A stretch of DNA of 64,000 bases. Origin: Heteronotia binoei. Taxonomy: Eukaryota. The first letter of the stretch is position 1; each line of letters starts with the position of its first letter. The notes under the pieces were generated by a model that did no database searches, had not been told where the DNA came from, and saw nothing but the letters and a program-made list of their open reading frames with translations. The stretch is from assembly GCF_032191835.1 (NCBI RefSeq), contig NC_083237.1, forward strand, positions 19,654,001 to 19,718,000, given 5' to 3'. Of the stretch, positions 4,420 to 42,508 are shown in pieces. The position numbers were made by a program, and so were the translations under genes.

Positions 4420-4740
4420 CATAAGAACATAAGAGAAGTCATGTTGGATCAGGCCAATGGCCCATCCAGTTCAACACTCTGTGTCACATAAGAACATAAG
4501 AGAACCCATGTTGGATCAGGCCAATGGCCCATCCAGTTCAACACTCTGTGTCACACAGTGGCCAAAAAAATCAAGTGCCATCAGGAGGTCCACCAGTGAG
4601 GCCAGGACACTAGAAGCCCTCCCACTCTTTTCCCCCCAAGCACCAAGAATACAGAGCTACACTGCCCCAGACAGAGAGTTCCAACAATAAGCTGTGGCTA
4701 ATAGCCACTGATGGACCTCTGCTCTATATGTTTATCCAAA
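4420..4740 (-). mobile_element. CR1 LINE 3' UTR fragment with duplicated terminal unit; contains the left edge of the duplicated segment
   Basis: Reverse complement of the 3' end of the CR1 at 50080-50737; cataagaacataag tail occurs twice (4420, 4487). Confidence 0.7.
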
Positions 4741-6052: not shown

Positions 6053-6256
6053 CAGGGCTTTTTTTGAGCAGGAACGCACAGGAACGCAGTCCCGGCTGGC
6101 TTGACGTCAGGGGGCATGGCCTGATATGCAAATGAGTTTGTGCCAGGCCTTTTCTACAAAAAGCCCTGTGTGAAACCATGGTGATGTCAGGGGGTGTGGC
6201 TTAATATACAAATGAGTTCCTGCTGGACTTTTTCCTACCCCCCCAAAAAAGGCTTG
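6053..6256. mobile_element. hAT MITE (CAGGGCTTTTTT TIR; octamer-bearing family) inside CR1
   Basis: TSD GGTGTATC / GGTGTATG; the paralogous site in unit D is empty (tgggtgtatcaacagag near 46471). Confidence 0.8.
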
Positions 6257-6631
6257 GGTGTATGAACAGAGCCATAACATCCAAATTGCAAGAGGTCCTT
6301 GTCCCACTATACCTTCATGGGTCAGGATGCAGCTGGAGTTCTGGAGGCCTCACTTCAAGAAGGATGTGGACAGAATGGAGGAAGTGCAGAGGAGAGTGAC
6401 CAGGATGATCAGGGGCCTGGAGACCAAGCCCTAGGAGAAAAGGCTGAGGGGAATGTTCTGTCTGGAGAAGAGGAGGTTGAGGGGGGACATGATGGTTCTC
6501 TTGAGGTATCTGAAGGGCTTGCTCTTGGAGGAGGGCAGGGAGTTATTCCTGTTGGCAGCAGAGAAGAAGACTTACAACAATGGGTTCCAACTAAGGGCAG
6601 GTAGGTACCGGCTGGACATTAGGAAAACCTA

Positions 6632-6915
6632 GGAGAGCCAGTTCGGTGTAGTGGTTAAGTGTGTGGACTCTTATCTGGGAGAACCAGGTTTGATTCCTCA
6701 CTCCTCCGCTGGCAGCTGCTAGCATGGCCTTGGCTCAGCCATAGCTCTGGCAGCGGTTGTTCTTGAAAGGGCAGCTGCTGTGAGAGCCCCCTCCAGACCC
6801 ACCCACCTCACAGGGTGTCTGTTGTGGGGGAGGAAGGTAAAGGAGATTGTGAACCTCTCTGAGACTCTTTGGAGTGGAGGGCGGGATATAAATCCAATAT
6901 CATCATCATCTTCTT
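6632..6915 (+). mobile_element. Squam3-like SINE shared by units A and B (18835-19120), absent in C and D
   Basis: Full head and tail present; unit C reads ggaaaaccctttttacagagttg with no insert. Confidence 0.8.
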
Positions 6916-7675
6916 TTTTACAGTCAGAGTTGTTCTCTGGAATGGACAGTGGAATGGACTAACGAGGGAGGTAGTGAGCCCCCCCCTCCTCACTGGCAGT
7001 CTTTAAACTGCGGCTGGACAAACCCTTGTCAGGGATGCTCTAGGCTGATCCTAAACTGAGCAGGGGGCTACACTAGAGGGCCTGTGTGCCCCTTCTAACT
7101 CTGTGATTCTATGAAATCACTTCTAATTCCGAGAAGTCTCCAGGGCCACCTGGGCATTGGCCACCCTCCTGAGGTTGTCTATGCTTTGTAGTTGTTGTCA
7201 TCAAATCGCAGCTCACTCACAGTGACCCCCAGTAGGATTTTCCAGGCAAGAGAGGTTCAGAGGTGGGTTGCTGTGGCCTGTCTTCGTGTCATGACCCTGG
7301 TCTTCCCTGGTCTGTGCTGGAACAAATTCAAGATATTCTTCATAACATGCCGTCCTCTCTAAACTTTAGAGAGAAGTGGGCAAAAGATCTAACCAGAGAG
7401 GAACCAAACCTTTTGTAACACCTAATTTGGGGAACTCTTTGTGTGTTCCAACACAGGTCAGTTGGTGGTTTACATAACCAACAGGAGAAGGTTGTAAAAG
7501 GAGGCTTCCGATATTTTTTCAGGAGGCAGGTCAGGAAACGGGAAGGATTAGCCCAGAGTGGGGGTTGTGACAAGACCTCTTGTGGGAAGATTCCACTGGA
7601 AGCCAGGGCCTGTTGGGGACATCATGGCCAGATGACTGCCAAATCATAGCCTTCCACATTCAACAGCCTCAGATT

Positions 7676-8090
7676 CAGGGCCAGTGCATGGGAGTAGGCA
7701 GTTGCCTAGGGCGCCACCTGGCCTGGGGGCACCACTGGATGCCCCCTCTCTGACGCATGACTCTGGCTCCTGACCGCTGTCCCCTTGTCCTCTCCCATCA
7801 CCAAGCTGCCCTCAACAAAGCCAAGCCACCCCCCTCTCCCTGATGTGTGACTTGGCCTCCCACCTCATCCTATCCTGCCACCCTCCTTCCTGGAGTGGCC
7901 GGTAAGCACTTATTCTCACAATTTTTTTTTATAACATTAGAATGTTTTTGAAAAATTAAAAATCAGTAAATTAAAAATTTGAAAAGTTTCAAGCTTGGTG
8001 CTCTTCAATTTCCCTATATTTTTTAATAATGGGGAGGGGGCGTTAGTGGGTGACTCGCCTACACTGCCCAAAAGCCAAGCACCGGCCCTG
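7676..8090. mobile_element. hAT MITE (CAGGGCCGGTGC TIR); paralogs at 19880-20293 and, truncated, from 31607
   Basis: TIRs cagggccagtgc / gcaccggccctg; perfect TSD CTCAGATT at 7668-7675 and 8091-8098; single CTCAGATT (empty site) at 48258-48265 in D. Confidence 0.9.
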
Positions 8091-9628
8091 CTCAGATTAG
8101 CTTAGACTCACTGCTCCTTTGACCTTTTTGCCAAACCAAAGAAAAGAAAACCAAAGAAAATCAAATAATCTGCATTCCTCCCAAAGGAAGATGACCCTGA
8201 ATGTAAAACGATCCTCCTCAACAAAGTTATTCACAAAACTGTAACTTGTACATGAATTTCAGTGGGTGCTGGGGTTGCCAAACTCCAGATGGGGTCTGGA
8301 GATCTCCTGGAATGATAGCCGAACTCCAGACTGCAGTGATAAGGTCCCCTGGAGAAAATGATTCTGCTGCTTTTAGGTGGGCTCTGTAGCACACTGAAGG
8401 TTTTCTAGCGGCTGTCAGAGCTGCCAACTCTGGGTGATTCCTGGAGATTTAGGGGGGGACCCTGGGGGGGGGAGAGGGGGGGTTTAGGGAGAGAAGGAAC
8501 CGCAGTAGGGTAGAATTCCATGAAGTCCACCCACTGAAGCAGCCATTTTCTTCATGGGAAGTGTCCTTTGGAGAACAGTTGTGATTTTGGAAGATCTCCA
8601 CGCCTTACCTAGTTGATAGCAACCCTAGGCTAAGGCAATGTACTAGGACCTAACCAGGGGTTGAATTCAGCAGGAGCTCACAGGAGCACCGCTCCTGAAC
8701 CTCCAGCCAGGGTCTGCATGCATTGGGGAGTTCTCTCCCTGCTTCACACAGATCCCGGGGTATATGCAAATGAGATATGCTACTGAGCTCCTGAACCTTT
8801 TTTTCTACAAAATGACTCCTGGACCTAACAAATCATTACGTATAAAATGAGAAAGAGAGGAGTAAATGAATATATGGAACTCTTTCATGCGATGGTGTAG
8901 TAGTGTAATGTAGTGGCTAAAAGCAGCAGACTCTAATATGGAGATCCGGCTTTGATTTCCCTCTCTTCTACATGAGGTCTGCTGGGTGACTTTGGGTCAG
9001 TCACAGTTCTCTCAGAACTCTCCCAGGCCGCCCTACAGCTCTCATTTTGGGCAGGAGCTCACAGGAACAGAGCTCTGGAACCCCTAAATTTTATTGTGTT
9101 CTTTCTTCTTAAGCCACCCCTCTCCCCTCCAAAAAATACATGCTTCTTGGCTCTATTGTTCAAATCCACTGTGAGAATTTTGCTGAACTCTAAGATATGA
9201 CAAACTTTTCTAATATTTCCCCCCACCAAAAATGGGAAAAAATAACCAAAACATATAAAGCAGATGGATGGAAATCTTCCTCATGCCACTGTGGCCACAG
9301 AGGGGAAAGCAAATTAAAAAGTAAGATGGGAGTAAGGTTTATTATGACCATTATAATTTGAGAAGCATTTTAAGGTAGACGCTGAGCTAATAGGATTTAG
9401 TACACCTTCGGGCGACGACTGGGGTGTGTGGCAAATGCAAATGAGTTGTGCTAATGAGCTCTGGCATCTCTTTTTCTATTAAATGACCCCTTCACAGGGT
9501 GTCTGTTGTGGTGAGAGGAAGGAAAGACTATTGTAAGCTGCTATGAGACTCATTCGGGTAGAGAAAAACAGGGTTTAAAAACCTTCTCTTTTTCTGTTCA
9601 ACTGAGAGCAAATTTTTTGCCACATCTT

Positions 9629-10525
9629 GACTGATAACAGACAGGCACTTTGGGCCGACTCAGAGACGTCTTTGAAATTGGCCCCAACCCCCCCTCCAGA
9701 CAGCAGCATCTGCCCCCCTTCCCTGACCTGTGCTCACCCTGTCCTCTGGGCCAATCCACCCAGCTCAAAAAGCTTCCACTGCCAAAGTGGTAGCAAACGT
9801 TTGGGCTGGCCACCATTTGCCTCCTGGATGTTTGGAAGGGGAAGGACACACATGAGGTGACTTGGCAGTGTGAAAGCGCCAAGCCGCCCCTAGCTGTTTC
9901 TGGCTTTTTTTCCTTTTCCTTTTTCAGTTTTATTTATACAAAATGCCTTGAGTGAAAATCAAACAGTAAGAGGAAAAACTGATGATCAGATTCCAAGCAA
10001 GTCAGTTCCTTTCCCCATCCAAAGGCAACCAGTAACTTGGCATTGTTTGCTCGTATTTTTTCCAGCCCTTTCTTGTAATGTTTCTTTGCAAAGCGCATGT
10101 TCCTCAGGAACTTGGGACCAACCCCCTTCAGAGATTCGTATCCATGTGATCTGGGCTTCTTAATGTCATTTCTGTGCCGTTTGCGAGACTGGTTGTGAGT
10201 GGTGTGGTTCTTGGCCATAGCTGAAACCTCCGTCTCCACTGCCGCTGGGACGGCAACCGGAAGAGCTGGGGTTTTTTTTCCCTTTAAAGGCCAGCCAGAG
10301 TGCTTGTGCTCATGAGCGCATGAGTGCTCAACCCATTACAAACAAAAACAAAAACAGAGCAGCGACTTCTGAGGTGCCTCCCCGTCTGGAGGTGCCTGGC
10401 CGCCTCACAGACGGGATGGGGCCACCTCGCTGGGGACCGTGTGGAGGCTCTGAGGTGACTCTTTTTGAGCAGTCCTGCTTTTGGCCACCTCCCAGCTGCC
10501 CCAGAATGTCCGTCTGTTCACAGCC
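9629..10525. mobile_element. TIR-bounded DNA element (Harbinger-like, 3-bp TSD) containing the RPL29 retrocopy; paralogs at 21839-22602 and 31828-36938
   Basis: Imperfect 26-bp TIRs match at 19/26 positions (gactgataacagacaggcactttggg vs reverse complement ggctgtgaacagacggacattctggg). TSD CTT on both sides; empty site cacacCTTgattaata at 49810 in D. Confidence 0.7.
9905..10265 (-). pseudogene. RPL29: Processed pseudogene of 60S ribosomal protein L29 (unit A copy)
   Basis: [61 protein letters not shown] at 10218-10036. Intronless; 5' TOP-like start CTCTTCCGGTT; AATAAA at 9934-9929 followed by a decayed poly(A). Substitutions at conserved residues (W16R, G20D, D36G). Confidence 0.92.
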
Positions 10526-10644
10526 CTTGATTAATAATTGGGAAGGCCACCCAATTGCTTCAGGGCCCCAATCAGCAGAGGAATGTGTGTAACGTAAGCA
10601 TATGCATCTTCCTCAGTTTGATCACTCATCTACTTAGCCTGCTA

Positions 10645-10757
10645 CATATGGGAACATATGAAGATGCCTTATGCTGAAGCAGACCCTCGGTCCAGCAGTC
10701 AGTATGGTCTGCTCAGACTGGCAGCAGCTCTCCAGGGTCTCAAGCTGAGGTTTCAAT
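10645..10757 (-). mobile_element. Squam2-like SINE 3' fragment (paralogs near 22725 and 37060)
   Basis: Reverse complement of the 3' half of the element at 60834. Confidence 0.65.
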
Positions 10758-11187
10758 GCCTATTTCAGTCCAGTTTAAATATATTACATTTAACCATCTG
10801 GTGATATCCCAGAAAACAGTGCGATAGTTGTCCTGACAGTAGCCATTTCAGACAGCTCTTCAGTTTAAAACTTCTTTGCTTTTGCTCTGGTCAGTGAACA
10901 GAAGCAGATCGTGAAGAAGTGTGACCAAAGCAAGCAGCTCTCTGAAGATTAAGCTATGGGGCCTCTGCCACAGTGAAGGTTGGTGCAAATTCAGTTTAGG
11001 CCCTGATATCTGGATAGGGATGCCAACCTCCAGGTGAGGCTTAGAGATCTCCTGGAAGTGTACCGTATCACCAGCCTTCAAAGTGCTCCAGAGATGCACA
11101 CTGGAAAGACAAGGCTCTGCCTTCAATACATGCTTGGAGAACATGACTGTGGGATTATTTCCTACTATTTAAAATCTCAATTTATAG

Positions 11188-11694
11188 TAGGGTTGCCAAG
11201 TCCAATTTAAGAAATATTTGGGGACTTTGGGGGTGGAGCCAGGAGACATTAGGGGTGGAGCCAAGATCAAGGCTGTGACAAACATAATTGAACTCCAAAG
11301 GGAGTTTTGGCCCTCACATTTAAAGGGACGGCACACCTATTCAATGCCTTCCTTCCATAGGAAATAATGAAGGATAGGGGCACCTTCTTTTGGGGCTCAT
11401 AAAATTGGACCCCCTGGTCCAATCTTTTTGAAGCTTGGGAGGTATTTTGGGAAGAGGCACTAGATGCTATACTGAAAATATGGTGCCTCTACCTCAAAAA
11501 ACAGCCCCCCAGAGCCCCAGATACTCGCAGATCAATTCTCCATTATTTTCTATGGGAATAAATATCCCTAGGAAATAATAGAGTTCCCAGCAGACATTTC
11601 CCTCCCCTCCCCCCGCTTTCTGATGACCCTGAAGAGCGGGGAGGGTCTCCAAACCGGGGGAACCCCTGCCCCCACTTGGGGATTGGCATCCCTA
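11188..11694. mobile_element. hAT MITE (TAGGGTTGCCA TIR) shared by A and B (23268-23774), absent in C
   Basis: TSD ATTTATAG / ACTTATAG; unit C reads aatttatagtgctgatg near 37600. Confidence 0.85.
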
Positions 11695-12480
11695 ACTTAT
11701 AGTGCTGATGCTCTGACAGAACGTACTCAAGAAAAATTTACTGTGTTCTGGTTCCAAATAGTGGAATATCTCACCAAACGTAAAATTCTCCCCCCAAAAA
11801 CCTGTTTTTATCATGATATGCTCTATTTCTAATATGTTCTGGGCTCACTTTCTCTCCTCTGGTCTGAATAAAAAAAAATAGTGAGCTCTAAATTGAGTTT
11901 GATTAACTGGATTTCTTAATAGAATATTGGGACAGTTCTTTGTACATTCCTACAGTAGAATCAGTCAATAGAATGTATTTTCACTGGATGCTCTTCAGTA
12001 TAACTGTATGACTGCTCCTTGGTTCTCTATTTTATGGGTTACTCTTTCTTTTTCTTGTTTTTTGTAAAAATGTGTTTATTATATCCTCACCAAGGCTGCA
12101 TTATCTGAGGTGACAGATTACAGTGTTCTTTATTGCAAACTGAAAATGTGTTAATCAAAATTTGATTAATTAAAAAAAAAAGTGATCCAGAGAAAATGGC
12201 ACCTTTGGACGGTGGACTCTATGGCTAGATTCCAGGTGGAATCCCTCCCCACATTCCCCTCTTCCCAGATTCCCCCCTCATATCTTTAGGAATTTCCCAA
12301 TTCAGAGCAGGCAACCCTCTCTTTAGGAGCAAGGGCTGAACATTTTTTTCCCTTTGGTGAGATTTCAAACCACCTAGGGCCACATCTCAGCTGCGCAGAA
12401 AGTTGCTACATGCCGGGTTACTTAATAGGGAACTTAGAGGGTTGGAACTTCTTCCGACAACCACAGGTTCCTTGTCACTG

Positions 12481-12595
12481 GTGAGTGCTGGCTGACCTTA
12501 TATAGCAGGAACCCTGGAAGGCAACCAGGCTTGAGAAGGGGATCCTCAACAGTTCTTCTTGAAGGAAGCTGAGAGCACACACATATCAGGTAAGT
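12481..12595 (+). promoter_or_regulatory. Predicted promoter and non-coding first exon of RNase gene 1
   Basis: TATATAG at 12499-12505; donor AG|GTAAGT at 12590; a second donor-like GTGAGT at 12481. All three motifs are kept in all four units. The predicted intron 12590-15665 ends at tttgcAG 30 nt before the ATG. Confidence 0.6.
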
Positions 12596-13305
12596 TCAAC
12601 GCCTTCATATCCCACTTCTAAAGAGGGCAAGAGACAGTGAGGGTAGATAAAGAAGCACTTTTCTCCCTTTCCCACTGTAAGAACTCATGGACACCCCATG
12701 AAATTGATGAGCAGTAGGCTTCAAACAGATCGAAGGAAGTCCTTCTTCACCTAAAGAGTCAGATGGAATTCACTGCTGCAGGGAGTGGTGGCAGATATGG
12801 GCATAGACAGCTTCAAGAGGGAATTGGATAAAGACATGGAGCAGTGTTCCATCTGTGCCCACAAGGTATAGATGGAACACTTTGTCCAGGGCAGTGATGT
12901 CCTTGAGTCTTGGGGGAATTACAACTGGCTACAGAGACGAATGCCCCAGGAGCATTTCAAAATGGCACTAAACTCCAAAAGGCTTGAGCCTTTTGAAATC
13001 TTACTGGAGACTTTCTGTCCCATTGTAGTATTTGGATGCACTGAAAAAAAAAATCGTGTGGATTTTGCTGCTGTTTGCAACTTATAGATGCATCAGAAAC
13101 ACTTTGATATTTTTTTCTGAGCTTTTGTCTTTGCTTGAGATACGTTGTTGGAGCCCCCTATGCTAGAAGAGGATTTGAAGCAGAAATAATCAAGTCGACC
13201 TGTTCATTGGGACTCCTTTGATGGAACTGTGAAACTTTTGTGGAATTGTTATTGCTATTTAGTCTTCTACTGAACATATTGTATGATTTTGTTTCAATAC
13301 ATTCT

Positions 13306-13871
13306 TAGAGAGCCACTTTGGAGTAGTGGTTAAGCGTGCGGACACTTATCTGGGAGAACCGGGTTTGATTCCCCCCTCCTCCACTTGCAGCTGCTGGAAT
13401 GGCCTTGGGTCAGCCATGGGCCTTGCAGAGAAGAAGAATAAGAAGAATTGCAGATTTATACCCCACACTTCTCCCTGAATCAGAGACTCAGAGTGTCTTA
13501 CAATCTCCCATATCTTCTCTCCCCACAACAGACACCCTGTGAGGCGGGTTGGGCTGAGAGGGCTCTCATAGCAGCTGCCCTTTCAACGACAACTCCTGAT
13601 ATAAGTATGGGTAACCCAAGTCCATTCCAACAAGTGCAGGTGGAGGAGTGGGGAATCAAAGCCGGTTCTTCCAGGTAAGAGTCCACCCACTTAACCACTA
13701 CACCAAACTGGCTCTCCACACCATACTGGCTCTCCTTTGAAAGGGCAGCTTCTGGGAGAACTCTCTCAGCCCCACCCACCTCACACTGCATCTGTATTGG
13801 TGGAGGAAGATAAAGGAGATTGTAAGGTGCTCTGATATTCAGAGTGAAGGGCAGTGTATAAATACAATATC
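13306..13871 (+). mobile_element. Squam3-like SINE with a nested reverse-orientation Squam3-like SINE (13431-13716)
   Basis: Forward head at 13306, reverse copy ending caccaaactggctctc, forward body resumes near 13737. Same nesting in B and C; the D copy (~53560-53820) is not interrupted. Confidence 0.8.
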
Positions 13872-14306
13872 CAGGGGTCATTTCGTATAAAAAGAGGTGC
13901 CAGAGTTAATTACTACAACTCATTTGAATATGCCAAACACCCCTGACATCACCAGAAGGTGCACTAAATTATATCAGCTTATTAGTCAAATCAAGCTCAG
14001 CATCTACCTTAAAATGTTTCTTTATAATTGCCACAATAAAACCTTACTCCCATCATCCTTTCTCAGTTACTTTCTCCTAGGTGGCCACAGTGGCATGATG
14101 AAGGTTTCCATCTCTCTGCTTTATCTGTTTTGGTTCTCCTTTTTTTGTGGGGGAAAAATATTAGAAAGTTTGTCAAATCTTAGAGCTCAGCAAAATTCTC
14201 ACAGGGGGTTTGAACAATGGAGCCCAGAAGCAAGTATGTTTTTTTGTTGGGAGGGGGTAAGAAAGAAAGAACACAATGAAATTCAGAGGTTCCTTTTACA
14301 GCTTAA

Positions 14307-14642
14307 GAGCCCCATGGCGCAGAGTGTTAAAGCTGCAGTACTGCAGTCTGAACTCTCTGCTCACGACCTGAGTTTGATCTCAGCAGAAGCTGGGTTTTCA
14401 GGTAGCTGGCTCAGGTTGACTCAGCCTTCCATCCTTCCGAGGTTGGTAAAACGAGTACCCAGCTTGCTGGGGGGAAAGTGTAGATGACTGGGGAAGGCAA
14501 TGGCAAACCATCCCGTAAAAAGTCTGCCATGAAAATGTTGTGGAAGCAACGTCACCCCAGAGTCGGAAACAACTGGGGCTTGCACAGGGGACCTTTCCTT
14601 TCCTTTCCTTTCCTTTCCTTTCCTTTCCTTTCCTTTCCTTTC
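14307..14642 (+). mobile_element. Sauria-type SINE with an expanded (TTTCC)n tail; paralog at 26383-26683, truncated in C; another copy at 52986-53252
   Basis: gagccccatggcgcagagtg head, Bov-B-like tail ggggaaggcaatggcaaacc, flanking CAGCTTAA duplication. Confidence 0.75.
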
Positions 14643-14903
14643 CAGCTTAATAGTATAAAACTATGCTTTTTTTGACAGTTTGATATCGTAAGATACGAAC
14701 ATGTTAACAGAACTATACATGACTTTGTTAAGTCTCACTTGTAGAGAAAAAAAATTAACTTGGAATGCTTTTTAAATGATCTATATTTTATGGAATGATG
14801 CAGATCAGAAATAGCGATATTCTACCTTACTCCCATTTCCTCTTTCCCTTTTCTTTTTTTCAAACTTGAATAAAAATATTTAAAACCAAAGTTTAGAAGT
14901 TCC

Positions 14904-15586
14904 CAGGGCTTTTCTTTGAGCAGGAACGCACAGGAACGCAGTTCTAGCTGGCCTGGTGTCAGGGGGTGTGACCTAATATGCAAATGAGTGTCTGCTGGGC
15001 TTTTTCTTCAAAACCCCTGTGTGAAACAATGGTGACATCAGGGGGTGTGACCTAATATGCAAATGAGTGTCTGCTGGACTTTTGCTACAAAACCCCTGGT
15101 GTGAACCAATGGTGACATCAGGGGCGTGGCCTGATATGCAAATGAGCTCCTGCTGGGATTTTTCAAAAAAAAAACCCTGTGTGAAACAATGGTGACATCA
15201 GGGGGTGTGGCCTAATATGCAAATGAGCGTCTGCTGGGCTTTTCCTACCCAAAAGCCCTGTGTGAAACAATGGTGACATCAGGGGATGTGGCCTGATATG
15301 CAAATGAGTTCCTGCTGGGCTTCTTCTACCAAACCCCCCCTGTGTGAAACAATGGTGACATCAGGGGGTGTGGCCTGATATGCAAATGAGTTCCTGCTGG
15401 GCTTTTTCTACCAACCCCCCCTGTGTGAAACAATGGTGACATCAGGGGGTGTGGCCTGATATGCAAATGAGTTCCTGCTGGGCTTCTTCTACCAAACCCC
15501 CCTGTGTGAAACAATGGTGACATCAGGCGGTGTGGCCTGATATGCAAATGAGTTCCTGCTGGGCTTTTTCTACCAAAAAAGCCCTG
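14904..15586. repeat. hAT MITE with an internal ~80-bp minisatellite carrying 8 ATGCAAAT octamers
   Basis: TIRs cagggctttt / aaaaaagccctg; TSD GAAGTTCC / GAGGTTCC; octamers at 14978, 15057, 15136, 15217, 15298, 15380, 15461 and 15542. Confidence 0.9.
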
Positions 15587-15695
15587 GAGGTTCCTCTCCT
15601 GTGAGCTCCTGCCCAAAAGGAGGCCTGCCAATTTCATCTTGTGTCTCCTTCTACCACCTTTGCAGGCCAGGAGCTCAGCTCCGAAGGTCCCAGCG

Positions 15696-16121
15696 ATGTC
15701 TCCCTCCGGCTACGCCCTTTGCCTCCTGCTCCTGGTGGCGGCCGTCTGGCTGTGGCTGCCCTGCTGCGAAGGCAAGCGCTTCCGACACTTCCTGAGCAAG
15801 CACCAGGACAACCCCAAGTCCTACTATGGCGATGACAACAACTACTGCAACAACATGATGCCCCGCAAGGGCCTTAGATGCCAGAGGAGAAACACCTTCA
15901 TCCATGCCACGGAGCGGCAGCTGAGGTCCATCTGCAATCGTGGAGGGCAGATCCAGAACGGCATCACCACCAGCAGGGACATATTCTCCATCACCACCTG
16001 CAAACGGAAGAGGAGGGGCTGGTTCAGGAGGCAGTGCAGGTACAACGGGAAGAGCAAGACAAGGAAAATCCGGGTCTTTTGCAGGAAAGGCAAGCCGGTC
16101 CGCTTCCTCTCCCACCTGTAG
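15696..16121 (+). CDS. RNase A superfamily protein 1 (141 aa; secreted, cationic, catalytic Lys/His replaced)
   Basis: Signal peptide MSPSG...CCEG; FLSKHQD (His12 motif), YCNNMM, CQRRNTFIH (CKxxNTF-like), six Cys, PVRF in place of PVHF. Single coding exon after acceptor AG at 15664-15665. Confidence 0.93.
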   Translation: MSPSGYALCLLLLVAAVWLWLPCCEGKRFRHFLSKHQDNPKSYYGDDNNYCNNMMPRKGLRCQRRNTFIHATERQLRSICNRGGQIQNGITTSRDIFSITTCKRKRRGWFRRQCRYNGKSKTRKIRVFCRKGKPVRFLSHL

Positions 16122-16431
16122 CCTCATGAGAAAGGCGGCTGCTCCTCCCATCGGGGAAATAAGAGCCCCTCTGGCTTCTCTGGCTCGCCGCTCGATGCCC
16201 TTGCATCTCTCACAGCACCCAGAGCTCATCATAATGCTCTGCAAATTCTTACCCATCCCTTCAAATATAAAGCACCAGCTAAGCAGCTGGTGATGTCTCC
16301 TCGCCTCTTTGGGATGAAGACAAAGCACGGTCATGGCGCTCGGCCACGGCAAAAGCCCCAGTTGCTCCTGCAGCCTCCAGAAGGTGTCTGTCTCGTTCCT
16401 GTTTCCCTGCTGCTGCTCCCCCCCCCTATAC

Positions 16432-16437
16432 AATAAA
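16432..16437 (+). terminator. Polyadenylation signal of gene 1
   Basis: AATAAA followed ~20 nt later by GT-rich tgttgtgttg; same context in genes 2-4. Confidence 0.75.
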
Positions 16438-16567
16438 GGCATTTATCATAATGAATGTTGTGTTGAATTCCTTGCACTGGACCACCCTGTGGTTTTTCCC
16501 AGGAAGATACGGTTTCAGAGATTAGCCGTGTTGGTCTGCAACAGAGCAGCTCGGTTTGAGGCCAGGA

Positions 16568-17234
16568 CGTCACCGTGTTGACAGGACCACGGAGGAGAAA
16601 CTCAGCCACAACAAAGAAAAAACTCTCTGCATAAAATACAATACTAGCTTGTTATGAATAATAAGTATCACAATACAAAAAAGAATATCGCCAGTACACA
16701 TCCTCTGAGTCATTCCAAGTTAAAACCTCATAAGGTCCACAATGCTCCTACGGGCCTTATGTGGCTCAAGGTCACTATATTAAATTCAGTACAGGGTTTG
16801 GAAAAAGGGTCCAACGGAGAACCAGTCTGCTTTGCAAGCCGTTTCGGATCTCAAATCCTTCTTCTAGGGACCAATCTTGTGAATATTGTACAGTTTTCTA
16901 GGTCCAGTAGTGCCAAAAATATTCAGTCATCAACTGTGTCAGTCCTGAGTTCCTAGCTTCCTCTAATTTTCATTCATAATAGCGGAAATGCCATAGTGAA
17001 ATACAATCCTTGTCAGCAATGCAGCAATATTGACATACTGGGGATGTGTGTGGGGGATGCCTGTGTTGTTGACAAGGATTCTATTTCACTATGGCATTCC
17101 CGCTATTAGGCATGAAAATTAGAGGAAGCTAGGAATTCAGGACCCACATGGTTGATGACTGATTATTTTTGGCACTACTGAACCTAAAAAATTGTATAAT
17201 ATTCTCAAGATTGGTCCCTAGAAGAAGGATTTGA
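16568..17234. mobile_element. Junction insert A/B: Penelope-like element remnant ending in a ~384-bp palindrome (16851-17234)
   Basis: Arms of ~165 bp (tcaaatccttcttctagggacc... / ...ggtccctagaagaaggatttga) around a ~50-bp spacer. Minus strand reads ccctagaagaaggatttgagatccgaaacgg, resembling a pLTR hammerhead motif. Confidence 0.6.
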
Positions 17235-20200
17235 CCCATCCAGTCCAACACTCTGTGTCACACAGTGGCCAAAAAACCCAAGTGCCATCAGGAGGTCCAC
17301 CAGTGGGGTCAGGAGAAGAGAAGTCCTCACACAATGGCCCCTCACAAGCACCAAGAATACGGAGCATCACTACCCGAGACAGAGAGTTCCAACGATAAGC
17401 TGTGGCTAATAGCCACTGATGGACCTCTGCTCCATATGTTTATCCAAATAAAACTTTGTTGGACTTAAAGGTGCCACTGGACTCACACTTTGTTCTCATG
17501 GATTTTGTTTGTCTGATGTAGTGGGATCTAGACTGTATGAAGGATGGGATAATTTGGGCAGAGACTGGGGAAAATGGAAGGAATATTCATTTAGCGGAGT
17601 GCTCAACGCAGCGGTGACACGAAGGGTATCGTTATCTTTGCAAAAACTAAAGTGAGCCCTTTATTCTTAGAAACTGAATTCTAGTCAGGGTAGAGACAGG
17701 ATTCTAATCTAACTAGGATGGACAGAGATGCAGAAAGTGTGTCTTGCCCTCCCAGGGTCAAGATGGAGAAGAGCGTGAAGAGAAGGCGTCAGCTGAAAGA
17801 AAGGAAGATTCTCCGAGAGTAAAAGGTGAGACATTGAAGGAATAGCAGCAGAAAGGAAGGATGTTTGGGGTCCTGACCTCTCCATCTTGCTGATTCTCTA
17901 TAGCCCCCTCCCCCGAAGTCCATGGCTCAGAGACAGTGCAAAGTTCTTCACTTCCAACAAAAACACAGTTGTGTGATTCCATGATGTCATTTCCTGGTAT
18001 CCATATTATTCAATGAACCCCCCCTCCTCCAAGTTTTCTCCTCATCACTCCATTGAGGGTGGGTGGGTGCCAAGCAGTGGGGACGGGAGGTGACAACCTG
18101 GTAAGACTAGCTCCAGGTAATGCAAACTTATGCTGGAATGTCAGTCTGTAGGCAGACACAAAATCCCAATTTAATTTCTTCTGCAAGAGAGGCAAATGCT
18201 GCAATGCTAAGGACTTTTTCTTGGAAATTAGGTTGCCAACCTCCTGCTTGGTTCTGGAGAGCTCTCCAAATTACACCTGATCTCCAGACATCAGTTCCCT
18301 TGGAGAAAGTGGCTGCCAGGTCTACTTCAAATGCCCTCCAACGGAGCCCTGAGATTGTCTTTGCTGGGCATTTTTCAAATGTAAGAGCTTCTGAGGCAAG
18401 GGTGCCCAGCTCTGAGTTGGGAAATTCCAGACGATTTAAGGGTGGAGCCAGGGGAGGGTTCAATTTGGAGAGGAGAGGGACCTCAGCAAGGTATAATGCC
18501 ACAGAGTCCAGCTGCATGGGTCAGGATGCAGCTGGAGTTCTGGAAGCCTCACTTCAAGAAGGATGTGGACAGAATGGAGGAAGTGCAGAGGAGAGTGACG
18601 AGGATGATCAGGGGCCTGGAGACCAAGCCCTAGGAGAAAAGGCTGAGGGAGTATGGAATGTCCAGTGTGGAGAAGAGGAGGTTGAGGGGGGACATGATGG
18701 TTCTCTTGAGGTATCTGAAGGGCTTGCTCTTGAGGAGGGCAGGGAGTTATTCCTGTTGGCAGCAGAGGAGATGACTTACAACAATGGGTTCCAACTAAGG
18801 GCAGGTAGGTACCGGCTGGACATTAGGAAAACCTAGGAGAGCCAGTTCGGTGTAGTGGTTAAGTGTGCGGACTCTTATCTGGGAGAACCAGGTTTGATTC
18901 CTCACTCCTCTGCTGGCAGCTGCTAGCATGGCCTTGGCTCAGCCATAGCTCTGGCAGCGGTTGTTCTTGAAAGGGCAGCTGCTGTGAGAGCCCCCTCCAG
19001 CCCCACCCACCTCACAGGGTGTCTGTTGTGGGGGAGGAAGGTAAAGGAGATTGTGAACCTCTCTGAGACTCTTTGGAGTGGAGGGCGGGATATAAATCCA
19101 ATATCATCATCATCTTCTTTTTTACAGTCAGAGTTGTTCTCTGGAATGGACAGTGGAATGGACTAACGAGGGAGGTAGTGAGCCCCCCCCTCCTCACTGG
19201 CAGTCTTTAAACTGCGGCTGGACAAACCCTTGTCAGGGATGCTCTAGGTTGATCCTAAACTGAGCAGGGGGCTACACTAGAGGGCCTGTGTGCCCCTTCT
19301 AACTCTGTGATTCTATGAAATCACTTCTAATTCCGAGAAGTCTCCAGGGCCACCTGGGCATTGGCCACCCTCCTGAGGTTGTCTATGCTTTGTAGTTGTT
19401 GTCATCAAATCGCAGCTCACTTACAGTGACCCCCAGTAGGATTTTCCAGGCGAGAGAGGTCCAGAGGTGGGTTGCTGTGGCCTGTCTTCGTGTCATGACC
19501 CTGGTCTTCCCTGGTCTGTGCTGGAACAAATTCAAGATATTCTTCATAACATGCCGTCCTCTCTAAACTTTAGAGAGAAGTGGGCAAAAGATCTAACCAG
19601 AGAGGAACCAAACCTTTTGTAACACCTAATTTGGGGAACTCTTTGTGTGTTCCAACACAGGTCAGTTGGTGGTTTACATAACCAACAGGAGAAGGTTGTA
19701 AAAGGAGGCTTCCGATATTTTTTCAGGAGGCAGGTCAGGAAACGGGAAGGATTAGCCCAGAGTGGGGGTTGTGACAAGACCTCTTGTGGGAAGATTCCAG
19801 TGGAAGCCAGGGCCTGTTGGGGACATCATGGCCAGATGACTGCCAAATCATAGCCTTCCACATTCAACAGCCTCAGATTCAGGGCCAGTGCATGGGAGTA
19901 GGCAGTTGCCTAGGGCGCCACCTGGCCTGGGGGCACCACTGGATGCCCCCTCTCTGACGCATGACTCTGGCTCCTGACCGCTGTCCCCTTGTCCTCTCCC
20001 ATCACCAAGCTGCCCTCAACAAAGCCAAGCCACCCCCCTCTCCCTGATGTGTGACTTGGCCTCCCACCTCATCCTATCCTGCCACCCTCCTTCCTGGAGT
20101 GGCCAGCAAGCACTTATTCTCACAATTTTTTTTATAACATTACAATGTTTTTGCAAAATTAAAAATCAGTAAATTAAAAATTTGAAAAGTTTCAAGTTTG

Positions 20201-22114
20201 GTGCTCTTCAATTTCCCTATATTTTTTAATAATGGGGAGGGGGCGTTAGTGGGTGACTCGCCTACACTGCCCAAAAGCCAAGCACCGGCCCTGCTCAGAT
20301 TAGCTTAGACTCACTGCTCCTTTGACCTTTTTGCCAAACCAAAGAAAAGAAAACCAAAGAAAAACAAATAATCTGCATTCCTCCCAAAGGAAGATGCCCC
20401 TGAATGTAAAACGATCCTCCTCAACAAAGTTATTCACAAAACTGTACAAAACTGTAACTTGTACATGAATTTCAGTGGGTGCTGGGGTTGCCAAACTCCA
20501 GATGGGGTCTGGAGATCTCCTGGAATGATAGCCGAACTCCGGACTGCAGTGATAAGGTCCCCTGGAGAAAATGATTCTGCTGCTTTTAGGTGGGCTCTGT
20601 AGCACACTGAAGGTTTTCTAGCGGCTGTCAGAGCTGCCAACTCTGGGTGATTCCTGGAGATTTAGGGGGGGGCCCTGGGGGGGAGGGGGGGTTTAGGGAG
20701 AGAAGGAACCGCAGTAGGGTAGAATTCCATGAAGTCCACCCACTGAAGCAGCCATTTTCTTCATGGGAAGTGTCCTTTGGAGAACAGTTGTGATTTTGGA
20801 AGATCTCCACGCCTTACCTAGTTGATAGCAACCCTAGGCTAAGGCAATGTACTAGGACCTAACCAGGGGTTGAATTCAGCAGGAGCTCACAGGAGCACCG
20901 CTCCTGAACCTCCAGCCAGGGTCTGCATGCATTGGGGAGTTCTCTCCCTGCTTCACACAGATCCCGGGGTATATGCAAATGAGATATGCTACTGAGCTCC
21001 TGAACCTTTTTTTCTACAAAATGACTCCTGGACCTAACAAATCATTACCTATAAAATGAGAAAGAGAGGAGTAAATGAATATATGGAGCTCTTTCATGCG
21101 ATGGTGTAGTAGTGTAATGTAGTGGCTAAAAGCAGCAGACTGTAATATGGAGATCCGGCTTTGATTTCCCTCTCTTCTACATGAGGCCTGCTGGGTGACT
21201 TTGGGTCAGTCACAGTTCTCTCAGAACTCTCCCAGGCCGCCCTACAGCTCTCATTTTGGGCAGGAGCTCACAGGAGCAGAGCTCTGGAACCCCTAAATTT
21301 TATTGTGTTCTTTCTTCTTAAGCCACCCCTCTCCCCTCCAAAAAATACATGCTTCTTGGCTCCATTGTTCAAATCCACTGTGAGAATTTTGCTGAACTCT
21401 AAGATATGACAAACTTTTCTAATATTTCCCCCCACCAAAAATGGGAAAAAATAACCAAAACATATAAAGCAGATGGATGGAAATCTTCCTCATGCCACTG
21501 TGGCCACAGAGGGGAAAGCAAATTAAAAAGTAAGATGGGAGTAAGGTTTTATTATGACCATTATAATTTGAGAAGCATTTTAAGGTATACGCTGAGCTAA
21601 TAGGATTTAGTACACCTTCGGGCGACGACTGGGGTGTGTGGCAAATGCAAATGAGTTGTGCTAATGAGCTCTGGCATCTCTTTTTCTATTAAATGACCCC
21701 TTCACAGGGTGTCTGTTGTGGTGAGAGGAAGGAAAGACTATTGTAAGCTGCTATGAGACTCATTTGGGTAGAGAAAAACAGGGTTTAAAAACCTTCTCTT
21801 TTTCTGTTCAACTGAGAGCAAATTTTTTGCCACATCTTGACTGATAACAGACAGGCACTTTGGGCCGACTCAGAGACGTCTTTGAAATTGGCCCCAACCC
21901 CCCCTCCAGACAGCAGCATCTGCCCCCCTTCCCTGACCTGTGCTCACCCTGTCCTCTGGGCCAATCCACCCAGCTCAAAAAGCTTCCACTGCCAAAGTGG
22001 TAGCAAACGTTTGGGCTGGCCACCATTTGCCTCCTGGATGTTTGGAAGGGGAAGGACACACATGAGGTGACTTGGCAGTGTGAAAGCGCCAAGCCGCCCC
22101 TAGCTGTTTCTGGC

Positions 22115-22472
22115 TTTTTTTCCTTTTCCTTTTTCAGTTTTATTTATACAAAATGCCTTGAGTGAAAATCAAACAGTAAGAGGAAAAACTGATGATCAGA
22201 TTCCAAGCAAGTCAGTTCCTTTCCCCATCCAAAGGCAACCAGTAACTTGGCATTGTTTGCTCGTATTTTTTCCAGCCCTTTCTTGTAATGTTTCTTTGCA
22301 AAGCGCATGTTCCTCAGGAACTTGGGACCAACCCCCTTCAGAGATTCGTATCCATGTGATCTGGGCTTCTTAATGTCATTTCTGTGCCGTTTGCGAGACT
22401 GGTTGTGAGTGGGGTGGTTCTTGGACTTGGCCATAGCTGAAACCTCCGTCGCCACTGCCGCTGGGACGGCAA
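22115..22472 (-). pseudogene. RPL29: RPL29 processed pseudogene (unit B copy)
   Basis: [20 protein letters not shown]...ANNAK from ATG at 22434; the 5' TOP end is deleted relative to A. Confidence 0.92.
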
Positions 22473-24554
22473 ACTGACGGCTCACAGACGGGATGGGGAC
22501 ACCTCGCTGGGGACCGTGTGGAGGCTCTGAGGTGACTCTTTTTGAGCAGTCCTGCTTTTGGCCACCTCCCAGCTGCCCCAGAATGCCCGTCTGTTCACAG
22601 CCCTTGATTAATAATTGGGAAGGCCACCCAATTGCTTCAGGGCCCCAATCCAGCAGAGGAATGTGTGTAACGTAAGCATATGCATCTTCCTCAGTTTGAT
22701 CACTCATCTACTTAGCCTGCTACATATGGGAACATATGAAGATGCCTTATGCTGAAGCAGACCCTCGGTCCATCAAAGTCAGTATGGTCTACTCAGACTG
22801 GCAGCAGCTCTCCAGGGTCTCAAGCTGAGGTTTTCATGCCTATTTCAGTCCAGCTTAAATATATTACATCTAACCATCTGGTGATATCCCAGAAAACAGT
22901 GCGATAGTTGTCCTGACAGTAGCCATTTCAGACAGGTCTTCTGTTTAAAACTTCTTTGCTTTTGCTCTGGTCAGTGAACAGAAGCAGATCGTGAAGAAGT
23001 GTGACCAAAGCAAGCAGCTCTCTGAAGATTAAGCTATGGGGCCTCTGCCACAGTGAAGGTTGGTGCAAATTCAGTTTAGGCCCTGATATCTGGATAGGGA
23101 TGCCAACCTCCAGGTGAGGCTTAGAGATCTCCTGGAAGTGTACCGTATCACCAGCCTTCAAAGTGCTCCAGAGATGCACACTGGAAAGACAAGGCTCTGC
23201 CTTCAATACATGCTTGGAGAACATGACTGTGGGATTATTTCCTACTATTTAAAATCTCAATTTATAGTAGGGTTGCCAAGTCCAATTTAAGAAATATTTG
23301 GGGACTTTGGGGGTGGAGCCAGGAGACATTAGGGGTGGAGCCAAGATCAAGGCTGTGACAAGCATAATTGAACTCCAAAGGGAGTTTTCGCCCTCACATT
23401 TAAAGGGATGGCACACCTATTCAATGCCTTCCTTCCATAGGAAATAATGAAGGATAGGGGGACCTTCTTTTGGGGCTCATAGAATTGGACCCCCTGGTCC
23501 AATCTTTTTGAAGCTTGGGAGGTATTTTGGGAAGAGGCAGTAGATGCTATACTGAAAATATGGTGCCTCTACCTTAAAAAACAGCCCCCCAGAGCCCCAG
23601 ATACTCGCAGATCAATTCTCCATTATTCTCTATGGGAATAAATCTCCCTAGGAAATAATAGAGTTCCCAGCAGACATTTCCCTCCCCTCCCCCCGCTTTC
23701 TGATGACCCTGAAGAGCGGGGAGGGTCTCCAAACCGGGGGATCACCTGCCCCCACCTGGGGATTGGCAACCCTAACTTATAGTGCTGATGCTCTGACAGA
23801 ACGTACTCAAGAAAAATTTACTGTGTTCTGGTTCCAAATAGTGGAATATCTCACCAAACATAAAATTCTCCCCCCAAAAACCTGTTTTTATCATGATATG
23901 CTCTATCTCTAATATGTTCTGGGCTCACTTTCTCTCCTCTGGTCTGAATAAAAAAAAAACTGTGAGCTCTAAATTGAGTTTGATTAACTGGATTTCTTAA
24001 TAGAATATTGGGACAGTTCTTTGTACATTCCTACAGTAGAATCAGTCAATAGAATGTATTGTCACGGGGTGCTCTTCAGTATAACTGTATGACTGCTCCT
24101 TGGTTCTCTATTTTATGGATTACTCTTTCTCTTTCTTGTTTTTTGTAAAAATGTGTTTATTATATCCTCAGCAAGGCTGCATTATTTGAGGTGACAGATT
24201 ACAGTGTTCTTTATTGCAAACTGAAAATGTGTTAATAAAAAATTGATTAATTAAAAAAAAAGTGCTCCAGAGAAAATGGCACCTTTGGACGGTGGACTCT
24301 ATGGCTAGATTCCAGGTGGAATCCCTCCCCACATTCCCCTCTTCCCAGGTTCCCCCCTCATATCTTTAGGAATTTCCCAATTCAGAGCAGGCAACCCTCT
24401 CTTTAGGAGCAAGGGCTGAACAATTTTTTTCCTTTGGTGAGATTTCAAACCACCTAGGGCCACATCTCAGCTGGGCAGAAAGTTGCTACATGCTGGGTTA
24501 CTAAATAGGGAACTTAGAGGGTTGGAACCGACAACCACAGGTTCTCTGCCGCCG

Positions 24555-24669
24555 GTGAGTGCTGGCTGGCCTTATATAGCAGGAACCCTGGAAGGCAACC
24601 AGGCCAGAGACGGGGATCCTCAACAGTTCTTCTTGAAGGAAGCTGAGAGCACACACATATCGGGTGAGT
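24555..24669 (+). promoter_or_regulatory. Predicted promoter and first exon of gene 2
   Basis: GTGAGT at 24555, TATATAG at 24573-24579, donor GG|GTGAGT at 24664; acceptor AG at 27221-27222. Confidence 0.6.
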
Positions 24670-26944
24670 TCAACGCCATCATGTCCCACATCTAAAGAGG
24701 GCAAGAGGACAGTGAGGGTAGAGAAAGAAGCACTTTTCTCCCTTTCCCACTGTAAGAACTCATGGACACCCCATGAAATTGATGAGCAGTAGGCTTCAAA
24801 CAGATCGAAGGAAGTTCTTCTTCACCTAAAGAGCCAGGTGGAATTCACTGCTGCAGGAAGTGGTGGCAGATATGGGCATAGACAGCTTCAAGAGGGGATT
24901 GGATAAAGATATGGAGCAGTGTTCCATCTGTGCCCACAAGGTATAGATGGAATACTTTGTCCAGGGCAGTGATGTCCTTGAGTCTTGGGCGAATTACAAC
25001 TGGCTACAGAGACGAATGCCCCAGGAGCATTTCAAAATGGCACTAAACTCCAAAAGGCTTGAGCCTTTTGAAATCTTACTGGAGACTTTCTGTCCCATTG
25101 TAGTCTTTGGATGCACTGAAAAAAAAATCCTGTGGGTTTTGCAGCTTTTTGCAACTTACAGATGCATCAGAAACACTTTGATATTTTTTCTGAGCTTTTG
25201 TCTTTGGTTGAGCTATGTTGTTGGAACCCCCTATGCTAGAAGAGGATTTGAAGCAGGAATAATCAAGTCGACCTCTTGTTCATTGGGACTCCTTTGATGG
25301 AACTGTGAAACTTTCGGGGAATTGTTATTGCTATTTAGTCTTCTACTGCACATATTGTATGATTTTGTTTCAATACATTCTTAGAGAGCCAGTTTGGAGT
25401 AGTGGTTAAGCGTGCGGACTCTTATCTGGGAGAACCGGGTTTGATTCCCCCCTCCTCCACTTGCAGCTGCTGGAATGGCCTTGGGTCAGCCATGGGCCTT
25501 GCAGAGAAGAAGAATAAGAAGAATTGCAGATTTATACCCCACCCTTCTCCCTGAATCAGAGACTCAGAGTGGCTTACAATCTCCTATATCTTCTCTCCCC
25601 ACAACAGACACCTTGTGAGGTGGGTGGGGCTGAGAGGGCTCTCACAGCAGCTGCCCTTTCAACGACAACTCCTGAGATAGCTACGGCTAACCCAAAGCCA
25701 TGCCAACAAGTGCAGGTGGAGGAGTGGAGAATCAAAGCCGGTTCTTCCAGATAAGAGTCCACCCACTTAACCACTACACCAAACTGGCTCTCCACACCAT
25801 ACTGGCTCTCCTTTGAAAGGGCAGCTTCTAGGAGAGCTCTCTCAGCCCCACCCACCTCACACTGCATCTGTATTGGGGGAGGAAGATAAAGGAGATTGTA
25901 AGGTGCTCTGATATTCAGAGTGAAGGGCAGTGTATAAATACAATATCCAGGGGTCATTTCGTATAAAAAGAGGTGCCAGAGTTCATTACTACAACTCATT
26001 TGAATATGCCAAACATTGACATCACCGGAAGGTGCACTAAATTATATCAGCTTATTAGCCAAATCAAGCTCAGCATCTACCTTAAAATATTTCTTTATAA
26101 TAGCCACAATAAAACCTTACTCCCATCATACTTTCTCAGTTACTTTCTCCTAGGTGGCCACAGTGGCATGATGAAGGTTTCCATCTCTCTGCTTTATCTG
26201 TTTTGGTTCTTCTCCTTTTTTTGTGAAGGAAAAATATTAGAATGTTTGTCAAATCTTAGAGCTCAGCAAAATTCTCACAGGGGGGTTGAACAATGGAGCC
26301 CAGAAGCAAGTATGTTTTTTTGTTGGGAGGGGGTAAGAAAGAGAGAGCACAATGAAATTCAGAGGTTCCTTTTACAGCTTAAGAGCCCCGTGGCGCAGAG
26401 TGGTAAAGCTGCAGTACTGCAGTCTGAACTCTCTGCTCACGACCTGAGTTTGATCTCAGCAGAAGCTGGGTTTTCAGGTAGCTGGCTCAGGTTGACTCAG
26501 CCTTCCATCCTTCTAAGGTCGGTAAAATGAGTACCCAGCTTGCTGGGGGGGGGGGGAAGTGTAGATAACTGGGGAAGGCAATGGCAAACCATCCCGTAAA
26601 AAGTCTGCCATGAAAATGTTGTGAAAGCAATGTCACCCCAGAGTCGGAAACAACTGGTGCTTGCACAGGGGACCTTTCCTTTCCAGCTTAATAGTATAAA
26701 GCTATGCTTTTTTTGACAGTTTGCTATCCTAAGATACGAACATGTTAACAGAACTATAAACGACTATGTTAAGACTCACTTGTAGAGAAAAAAAATTAAC
26801 TTGGAATGCTTTTTAAATGCTCTATATTTTATTGAATGATGCAGATCAGAAATAGCGATATTCTATCTTACTCCCATTTCCTCTTTCCCGTTTCTTTTTT
26901 TCAAAATTGAATAAAAATATTTAAAATCAAAATTTAGAACTTCC

Positions 26945-27143
26945 CAGGGCTTTTCTTTGAGCAGGAATGCACAGGAACGCAGTTCCAGCTGGCCTGGTGT
27001 CAGGGGGTGTGACCTAATTTGCAAATGAGTGCCTGCTGGGCTTTTTCTTCAACCCCCCCCGTGTGAAACAATGGTGACATCAGAGGGTGTGGCCTGATAC
27101 GCAAATGAGTGTCTGCTGGGCTTTTTCTACCAAAAAAGCCCTG
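26945..27143. mobile_element. Octamer-family hAT MITE, unit B allele (2 units, both octamers mutated)
   Basis: Orthologous to 14904; reads tttgcaaat and acgcaaat instead of atgcaaat. Confidence 0.85.
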
Positions 27144-27252
27144 GAGGTTCCGCTCCTGTGAGCTCCTGTCCAAAAGGAGGCCTGCCAATATCATCTTGTG
27201 TCTCCTTCTTCCACCTTTGCAGGCCAGGAGCTCAGCTCCGAAGGTCCCAGCG

Positions 27253-27678
27253 ATGTCTCCCTCTGGCTACACCCTTTGCCTCCTGCTCCTGGTGGCAGCC
27301 GTCTGGCTGTGGCTGCCCTGCTGCGAAGGCAAGCGCTTCCGACGCTTCCTGAGAAAGCACCAGGACTACCCCAAGTCCAACTATGGCGACGACAACAACT
27401 ACTGCAACAACGTGATGCCCCTCAAGGGCATGAGGTGCCGGAGGAGAAACACCTTCATCCATGCCACGCAGCAGCAGCTGAGGTTCATCTGCAGTCCCGA
27501 AGGGCAGATCCAGAATGGTATCACCACCAGCAGGGCCATCTTCTCCATCACCACCTGCAAACGGAAGAGGAGGGGCTGGTTCAGGAGGCAGTGCAGGTAC
27601 AAGGGGAAGAGCAAGACAAGGAAAATCCAGGTCTTATGCAGGAAAGGCCGGCCGGTCCGCTTCCTCTCCCACCTGTAG
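27253..27678 (+). CDS. RNase A superfamily protein 2 (141 aa; cationic, catalytic Lys/His replaced)
   Basis: FLRKHQD, CRRRNTFIH, six Cys, PVRF; 20 amino-acid differences from gene 1. Confidence 0.93.
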   Translation: MSPSGYTLCLLLLVAAVWLWLPCCEGKRFRRFLRKHQDYPKSNYGDDNNYCNNVMPLKGMRCRRRNTFIHATQQQLRFICSPEGQIQNGITTSRAIFSITTCKRKRRGWFRRQCRYKGKSKTRKIQVLCRKGRPVRFLSHL

Positions 27679-27968
27679 CCTCATGAGAAAACGGCCGCTC
27701 CTCCCATCGGGGAAATAAGAGCCCCCCTGGCTTCTCTGGCTCGCCGCTCCATGCCCTTGCATCTCTCACAGCACCCAGAGCTCGTCATAATGCTCTGCAA
27801 ATTCTTACCCATCCCTTCAAATATAAAGCACCAGCTAAGCAGCTGGTGATGTCTCCTCGCCTCTTTGGGACGAAGGCAAAGCACAGTCATGGTGCTCGGC
27901 CACGCCGAAAGGCTCAAGAAGGTGTCTGTCTCGTTTCTGTTTCCCTGATGCTGCTCCCCCCGCTATAC

Positions 27969-27974
27969 AATAAA
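27969..27974 (+). terminator. Polyadenylation signal of gene 2
   Basis: AATAAA in the context conserved with gene 1. Confidence 0.75.
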
Positions 27975-28106
27975 GGCATTTATCATAATGAATGTTGTGT
28001 TGATTCCCTTGCACTGGACCGCCCTGTGGTTTTCTCCAGGAAGATATGGTTTCAGAGATTAGCCGCATTGGTGTCTGCAGCAGAGCAGCTCGATTTGAAG
28101 CCAGGA

Positions 28107-36394: not shown

Positions 36395-36531
36395 AAAAAG
36401 CTACCACTGCCAAAGTGGTAGCAAACATTTGGGCTGACCACCAGTCGCCTCCTGAATGTTTGGAAGGGGAAGGGCGCACACGAGGCGACTTGGCAGTGTG
36501 AAAGTGCCAAGCTGCCCCAAGCCGTTTCTGG

Positions 36532-42502: not shown

Positions 42503-42508
42503 AATAAA
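42503..42508 (+). terminator. Polyadenylation signal of gene 3
   Basis: AATAAA in the conserved context. Confidence 0.75.

Follow-up and report, generated by a model that had tools for sequence, protein, structure and literature searches.

The window that we analysed is a 64-kb stretch of Heteronotia DNA with no runs of N and a G+C content of 47%. Self-BLAST of the window identified four head-to-tail units (A to D) of about 11-14 kb each, and every unit contains an intact ORF of the RNase A family (PF00074). Because the annotated upstream exons of the RNase gene map inside the units as well, each unit is a whole gene; the unit ends about 120 bp past the AATAAA of its gene. A fifth RNase gene, the older paralogue E, lies downstream of D. 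Alignments of the junctions show that a spacer of about 665 bp is common to all three internal junctions (J1 to J3). Table 1 gives the coordinates; the start of the unit is ambiguous by about 3 nt.

Table 1. Coordinates of features in the 64-kb window
Feature	Position	Strand	Description
Nested palindrome	520-800		Arms 587-654/667-734 within arms 520-586/734-800
CR1-like tail in head-to-tail units	4420-4560		Units of ~68 bp
Upstream continuation of CR1-like tail repeat	4420-4524	.	Only before unit A
Unit A (S)	4525-16567	+	Complete RNase gene: coding exon and the annotated exons upstream of it; ORF 15696-16121 (self-BLAST, Pfam PF00074, exon matches of the annotated protein)
Minisatellite	14959-15586		~80-bp period
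Old 3'-terminal fragment, taken to be Penelope-like	16524-16567	+	Last ~45 bp of every unit; right breakpoint at or near fragment end
Spacer J1	16568-17234	+	283 nt non-palindromic; left arm 16851-17024, loop 17025-17060, right arm 17061-17234
Unit B	17235-28106	+	ORF 27253-27678; mosaic (self-BLAST, ORF list)
Spacer J2	28107-28771	+	Arms 28389-28562 and 28599-28771
Unit C	28772-42638	+	ORF 41789-42196, 135 aa, 6-residue deletion (self-BLAST, PF00074)
Spacer J3	42639-44093	+	Left arm 42921-43883, interrupted by 789-bp element; right arm 43920-44093
789-bp element	42974-43762		Within the left arm of J3
Unit D	44094-56583	+	ORF 55711-56136; slowest-evolving copy; no spacer after D
Fold-back MITE	47129-47276		Same family as the next MITE
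CR1-like tail copy	50348-50744		Tail runs on upstream, as in A
CR1-like tail in head-to-tail units	50540-50745		Units of ~68 bp
Right flank R of the array	56584-61457	+	Leads to paralogue E; no similarity to spacer
Fold-back MITE	58895-59030		CCTAATC target duplication, hAT-like
tRNA-Thr(GGU)-like sequence	60833-60905		Rfam 49.9 bits; ARAGORN
RNase paralogue E	61458-61871		Older, fifth copy; downstream of D
Penelope-like hairpin insertion	62471-62693		Within 62457-62707
ORF with integrase core	63045-63908	-	PF00665, E = 1.3e-09

The catalytic histidine near the C-terminus is missing from all five RNase A-like proteins, which have PVRF, PVRY or PVYF at this site; the proteins of Zootoca and Rhineura and some of the Gekko copies have PVHF or PVHY. 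After the cysteine, the counterpart of Lys41 is Q, R or A, and all five proteins are very basic. The RNases may be non-catalytic and of the host-defence type. The pairwise dN/dS among the four genes of the array is 0.5-0.8, which gives no signal of positive selection among them. The array is a Heteronotia-specific expansion of a fast-evolving and strongly basic protein of the RNase A type, and may interest those who work on host-defence RNases. Just upstream of the coding exon, there is a minisatellite with a period of about 80 bp, which is expanded in unit A alone. About 550 bp upstream of gene E, there is a tRNA-Thr(GGU)-like sequence, which could be a real tRNA gene or the head of a SINE.

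Growth of the array

A tree of the proteins strongly supports the branching order (D,(C,(A,B))) for the Heteronotia genes of the array, and the branch to D is short. The Gekko copies form a separate clade, and E groups with domain 2 of a fused gene model from Gekko kuhli. D is next to E, which is the same order as in the fused model. A protein search found orthologues in Gekko, Eublepharis, Euleptes, and Sphaerodactylus, and those of other geckos share 62-71% identity with D, as compared to 46-58% with A-C. D is the conservative, parent-like copy.

Across the 3,521 columns that are reliably aligned, the K2P distance is 0.116-0.129 between D and A, B, or C, 0.061-0.075 between C and A or B, and 0.047 between A and B. 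(Just 3.5 kb or so of the roughly 12-kb unit can be aligned reliably across all four copies.) About half of the unit's sequence, as judged from A-C, has been lost or replaced in D.

The identity between units is mosaic. The first 0.65 kb or so of B is closer to C, and the region at 6.6-10.7 kb in A (18.8-22.8 kb in B) is 99-100% identical between A and B, with 93-97% identity for the remainder. Mosaic identity is the signature of unequal crossing-over together with conversion, and one and the same junction is therefore found at every internal boundary. The mosaic units and the match between gene tree and physical order support later copying of the junction by unequal crossing-over or conversion; unequal crossing-over had been proposed in the preliminary description of this DNA. 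More broadly, what is expected of a tandem array that expanded by non-allelic homologous recombination (NAHR) is all present: identical internal junctions, mosaic neighbours, and a tree whose order is the physical order. Nothing is unusual in this respect. NAHR explains only how the junction was copied, not how it originated.

The spacer and its breakpoints

The last 384 bp of the spacer in J1 is an inverted repeat with arms of 174 nt, which are 90% complementary, and a loop of 36 nt; the same is true of J2 and J3. Viewed as a whole, the spacer consists of a long copy (16568-17024, 457 nt), the 36-nt loop, and an inverted partial copy of 174 nt. As single-stranded DNA, the inverted repeat of J1 has a folding energy of -156.5 kcal/mol (z = -28.8 as compared to shuffled sequences). 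No base separates the right arm of the palindrome from the start of the next unit. J3 is longer than J1 or J2 only because an element of 789 bp sits in its left arm. This element has imperfect inverted ends of about 26 nt and a direct repeat of CCA, has no match in Pfam, and is present only in the third copy of the junction.

When we compared the spacer to the whole 64-kb window with a word size of 7, BLAST found only the three junction copies and the spacer's own arms. In particular, the spacer is absent before 4525 and after 56583. The homology of unit D runs up to GCTAGGA (56583) and is followed by complete divergence. So the layout is S-[spacer]-S, where S is the unit: each of the three internal junctions has a spacer, and the two outer edges have none. 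As to the spacer, its palindrome, and the edges, the preliminary description was accurate in every particular; its comparison to a 12-kb target-site duplication describes the shape only. The three copies of the spacer differ from one another by 6-10%, which marks them as true paralogues rather than a duplication made by the assembly.

The divergence between the arms indicates the age of the palindrome. The arm-to-arm distance averages 0.095 (K2P; range 0.073-0.119), and the distances between like arms of different junction copies are 0.060-0.092. The average lies between 0.068, which is the midpoint for C versus A or B, and 0.123, which is the mean for D versus A, B, or C. If we compare the consensus of the left arms to the consensus of the right arms (the majority of three), then 9 of 174 sites differ. 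If the palindrome was perfect when D split from A-C, we would expect 9.6 differences, counted to the separation of the junction copies. These counts suggest that the palindrome was near-perfect at the first duplication and arose at roughly that time, but the sample is small (174 sites only), and gene conversion between the arms would make the palindrome look younger.

At the left breakpoint, every unit starts inside a CR1-like tail repeat that has a very high copy number. In A, the tail continues upstream, as it also does in another copy in the window (Table 1). In B, C, and D, it is cut at CCCATCC. Similarly, the consensus of loose ends before 17235, from 1131 contigs of a relative, has the same upstream sequence as A. 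Because the tail continues in A and in about 1,100 contigs of the family, the spacer meets the unit start at a rearrangement breakpoint, and the ancestral left flank is preserved in A. The uninterrupted tail in A and in the family at large thus shows that this junction is derived. In two places in the window, the CR1-like tail is arranged in head-to-tail units of about 68 bp.

At the right breakpoint, every unit ends with an old fragment of a repeat, which we take to be the 3' terminus of a Penelope-like element, based on its architecture and on what is known of these elements. The junction between the unit and the spacer may be derived as well. If the flank after D were ancestral, then the Penelope-like body might continue into R. 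With one copy from the family, the similarity of this body to the sequence past 56583 has p = 0.04-0.10 for R alone and p = 0.001-0.009 for a colinear alignment across the boundary; the same continuity test with the spacer gives p = 0.5-1.0. A second copy from the family and an nhmmer profile did not confirm the continuity into R, and the register of the profile ends the old fragment near the boundary. Also, with one Penelope-like copy, the unit-end fragment aligns 7 nt into the spacer in A. At most, the match to one copy is a hint that D's flank might be ancestral, which the second copy and the profile do not repeat.

We also looked for microhomology at the breakpoints. The candidate GCCCAT..AGTCC is near both breakpoints, but it was dropped as it would also be found in 25% of random pairs of regions. 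No microhomology at the breakpoints was significant above chance.

Searches for the source of the spacer

The preliminary description called the spacer Penelope-like, and our searches argue against this label. The spacer has no ORF of over 100 amino acids, no match in Pfam, and no remnant of a reverse transcriptase or an endonuclease (RT or GIY-YIG coding). A word search with its ORF of 100 amino acids found no relatives, which is weak evidence, as such ORFs are rarely annotated. The spacer has no short target-site duplication (TSD) and no tail, the spacer as a whole has no terminal repeats, and the end and the start of the unit share no direct repeat. We used Smith-Waterman alignment to compare the spacer to the Penelope-like copies in the window, which were the members of the family that this comparison covered, and the scores were no better than for shuffled sequences (p = 0.4-0.6). 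An 8-mer from the Penelope-like 3' terminus, CCGTGTTG, does recur in J1 and J3, 6 nt inside the spacer. However, this is a post hoc observation, and the alignment as a whole lacks significance. The Penelope-like motif behind the earlier label may be the fragment at the unit end (16524-16567), which is outside of the spacer.

Rfam said little about the origin of the spacer. There was no hammerhead in the spacer, but there was none in the control Penelope-like copies either, so this test has no power. The weak matches to miRNAs in the spacer merely reflect the hairpin.

The depth of coverage by contigs from a relative (run X1), taken over a stretch of 2,401 nt, was 0 across 16572-17138 and 0.67 across 17139-17219. 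To the left of the spacer, it was 6525 in the bin at 16491-16571, which holds the Penelope-like fragment, and directly to the right, about 59,500 contigs fell on the repeat at 17220-17543. Because these contigs cover repeats and some coding sequence, but not the unique DNA of the locus, the depth excludes only a high-copy family that is shared with the relative, and not a low-copy or species-specific element.

The preliminary description had also proposed that the first duplication arose with the insertion or repair of a Penelope element. The timing is consistent with this proposal (9 differences between the arms versus 9.6 expected), but the Penelope identity of the spacer is not supported. 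The spacer does contain a 5'-truncated long copy with an adjacent inverted copy, and this would also be expected of any snap-back synthesis.

The window also contains other hairpins, whose positions are given in Table 1. A Penelope-like hairpin insertion has a copy of 128 nt, a loop of 8 nt, and an inverted partial copy of 87 nt. It is flanked by a TSD of 14 bp (AGTACAGCATGTAG), and the 3' end of the 128-nt copy abuts the target. This insertion is a clean example of snap-back architecture. Two fold-back MITEs belong to one family, whose ends begin with CAGGGGTGGCC; they have arms of 63-69 nt and loops of 10 nt.

Explanations for the first duplication

We tentatively prefer to read the spacer as junction filler that includes a snap-back copy, arose in the first duplication, and was then amplified. 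A plus-strand end that was broken or stalled about 120 bp past the polyadenylation signal (after 16567 or 56583) would have been extended by about 0.49 kb on a foreign template. The extended end would then have snapped back and copied 174 nt of its own new DNA, which would give the palindrome. This end would have been joined, without useful homology, to a break in the CR1-like tail at the unit start, and the unit would have been replicated or ligated a second time, so that L-S-R became L-S-I-S-R (where I is the spacer, and L and R are the flanks). Unequal crossing-over and gene conversion would have taken two units to four. Each step of growth would have carried one period of S+I, which would place the spacer at all internal junctions and leave both outer edges free of it. 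We infer both the single event and the strand-level steps. No donor for the 0.49 kb was found within the 64-kb window.

This kind of event is already known: a tandem duplication with an insertion and a fold-back at the junction, followed by NAHR. The closest likeness is to template switching (FoSTeS/MMBIR) or to end-joining with captured DNA (cf. PMC7025897, PMC3907307, PMC2671141). As in junctions of this type, the extra DNA is exactly at the junction of the duplication, part of the insert is an inverted copy of the adjacent insert, with a short spacer in between, and the outer edges are free. The gecko junction differs in that no microhomology and no donor within the window were detected, and in that it is old, germline, fixed, and amplified to four units. 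It is a well-preserved new example of the known kind.

In the main alternative, the spacer would be the ancestral 3' flank of the unit, which was lost or replaced after D. The original arrangement would be L-S-I-R', with I as a full palindromic element, and the first duplication would have copied S and part of I, with its breakpoint inside the right arm of a longer palindrome. If the breakpoint was within the right arm, then both the apparent left edge (16851) and the exact stop of the arm where the next unit begins are mere mirror images of the breakpoint. Ordinary events would suffice for this history, and hairpin elements are common in the window. Palindromes are fragile sites. The turnover of sequence in D is large, and given that about half of the unit is gone or replaced in D, the loss of the spacer after D is not far-fetched. 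The alignment of the unit-end fragment to one Penelope-like copy, which extends 7 nt into the spacer in A, is another point in its favour. Against this, an extra deletion of the whole of I after D is required, and the palindrome must have been still near-perfect when it was duplicated. Also, no further member of the implied family of palindromic elements turned up in the window or among the contigs of the relative, and R has the weak colinear match to the Penelope-like body, which the spacer does not. Altogether, we consider an ancestral flank to be possible but rather unlikely.

Another explanation, of the class that the preliminary description proposed, is that the cDNA of a retroelement, Penelope-like or other, was primed at a nick past the unit end, that reverse transcriptase snapped back to make the second strand, and that the product was bridged to a break in the sister chromatid 12 kb upstream. 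The duplicated unit would then resemble a giant target-site duplication. If so, a germline product of reverse transcription bridged two breaks in sister chromatids and founded the lineage-specific expansion of this gene family, which we think improbable. The architecture of the spacer, with a long copy and an adjacent inverted partial copy, does match the Penelope-like hairpin insertion in the window, and Penelope-like elements typically have inverted copies with a 5' truncation (PMC8557442). The recurrence of the 8-mer in J1 and J3 would fit as well, if it were not a post hoc observation. In contrast to known Penelope-like insertions, the spacer lacks similarity to the copies in the window (it scores like shuffled sequence), a short TSD, a remnant of RT or endonuclease coding, and signs of dispersal as a family: neither the window nor the relative's contigs contain a further copy, even though the adjoining Penelope-like and CR1-like repeats pile up in those contigs.

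There is a precedent for such a bridge. In tumours, L1 insertions have been found to bridge tandem duplications (PMC7058536, Fig. 7), which gives the same S-[insert]-S layout with free outer edges. However, those junctions have a recognisable L1, poly(A), and an endonuclease motif, while the gecko spacer has no identity, no tail, and no target motif. If reverse transcription did bridge the gecko duplication, then this would be the fixed evolutionary counterpart of events that have been seen so far in tumours only, and the first for a Penelope-type element.

It is very doubtful that a fold-back MITE caused the junction, by aberrant transposition at the MITE's end, or landed at a plain S|S boundary before the array grew: although the window has fold-back MITEs with hAT-like TSDs of 7-8 bp and a DNA-transposon-like element did land in J3, the spacer has no TSD, no termini like those of the family, and no other copy, its arms and loop (174 nt and 36 nt) are unlike those of the window's MITEs (63-69 nt and 10 nt), its 283-nt non-palindromic part is left unexplained, and for a later landing to hit precisely the junction would take a coincidence of about 1 in 1000. 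Transposition of Ac by reversed ends does yield tandem direct duplications with the element at the junction (PMC3744419), and the gecko array is like these in that its tandem duplication has, at the junction, an insert resembling a mobile element. But that model predicts that the element is also at one outer edge, with 8-bp TSDs at the breakpoints, and in the gecko array, the spacer is missing from both outer edges and the breakpoints have no TSDs. The transposase-based models fail their own predictions.

Old tandem arrays rarely keep a founding junction that is still readable. Here, what we take to be the scar of the first duplication is present in three diverged copies, so the founding of the array can be separated from its later growth by recombination, and can be roughly dated. 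If the template for the spacer was the RNA of a retroelement, then the origin of a gene family would be tied directly to the activity of a retroelement. If the template was not a retroelement, then this complex duplication junction is a clean case but not an unusual one.

Two other features of the window are listed in Table 1. One is a nested palindrome, in which one pair of arms lies within another. The other, at the right end of the window, is an ORF on the minus strand with an integrase core, which is a remnant of an LTR retroelement.
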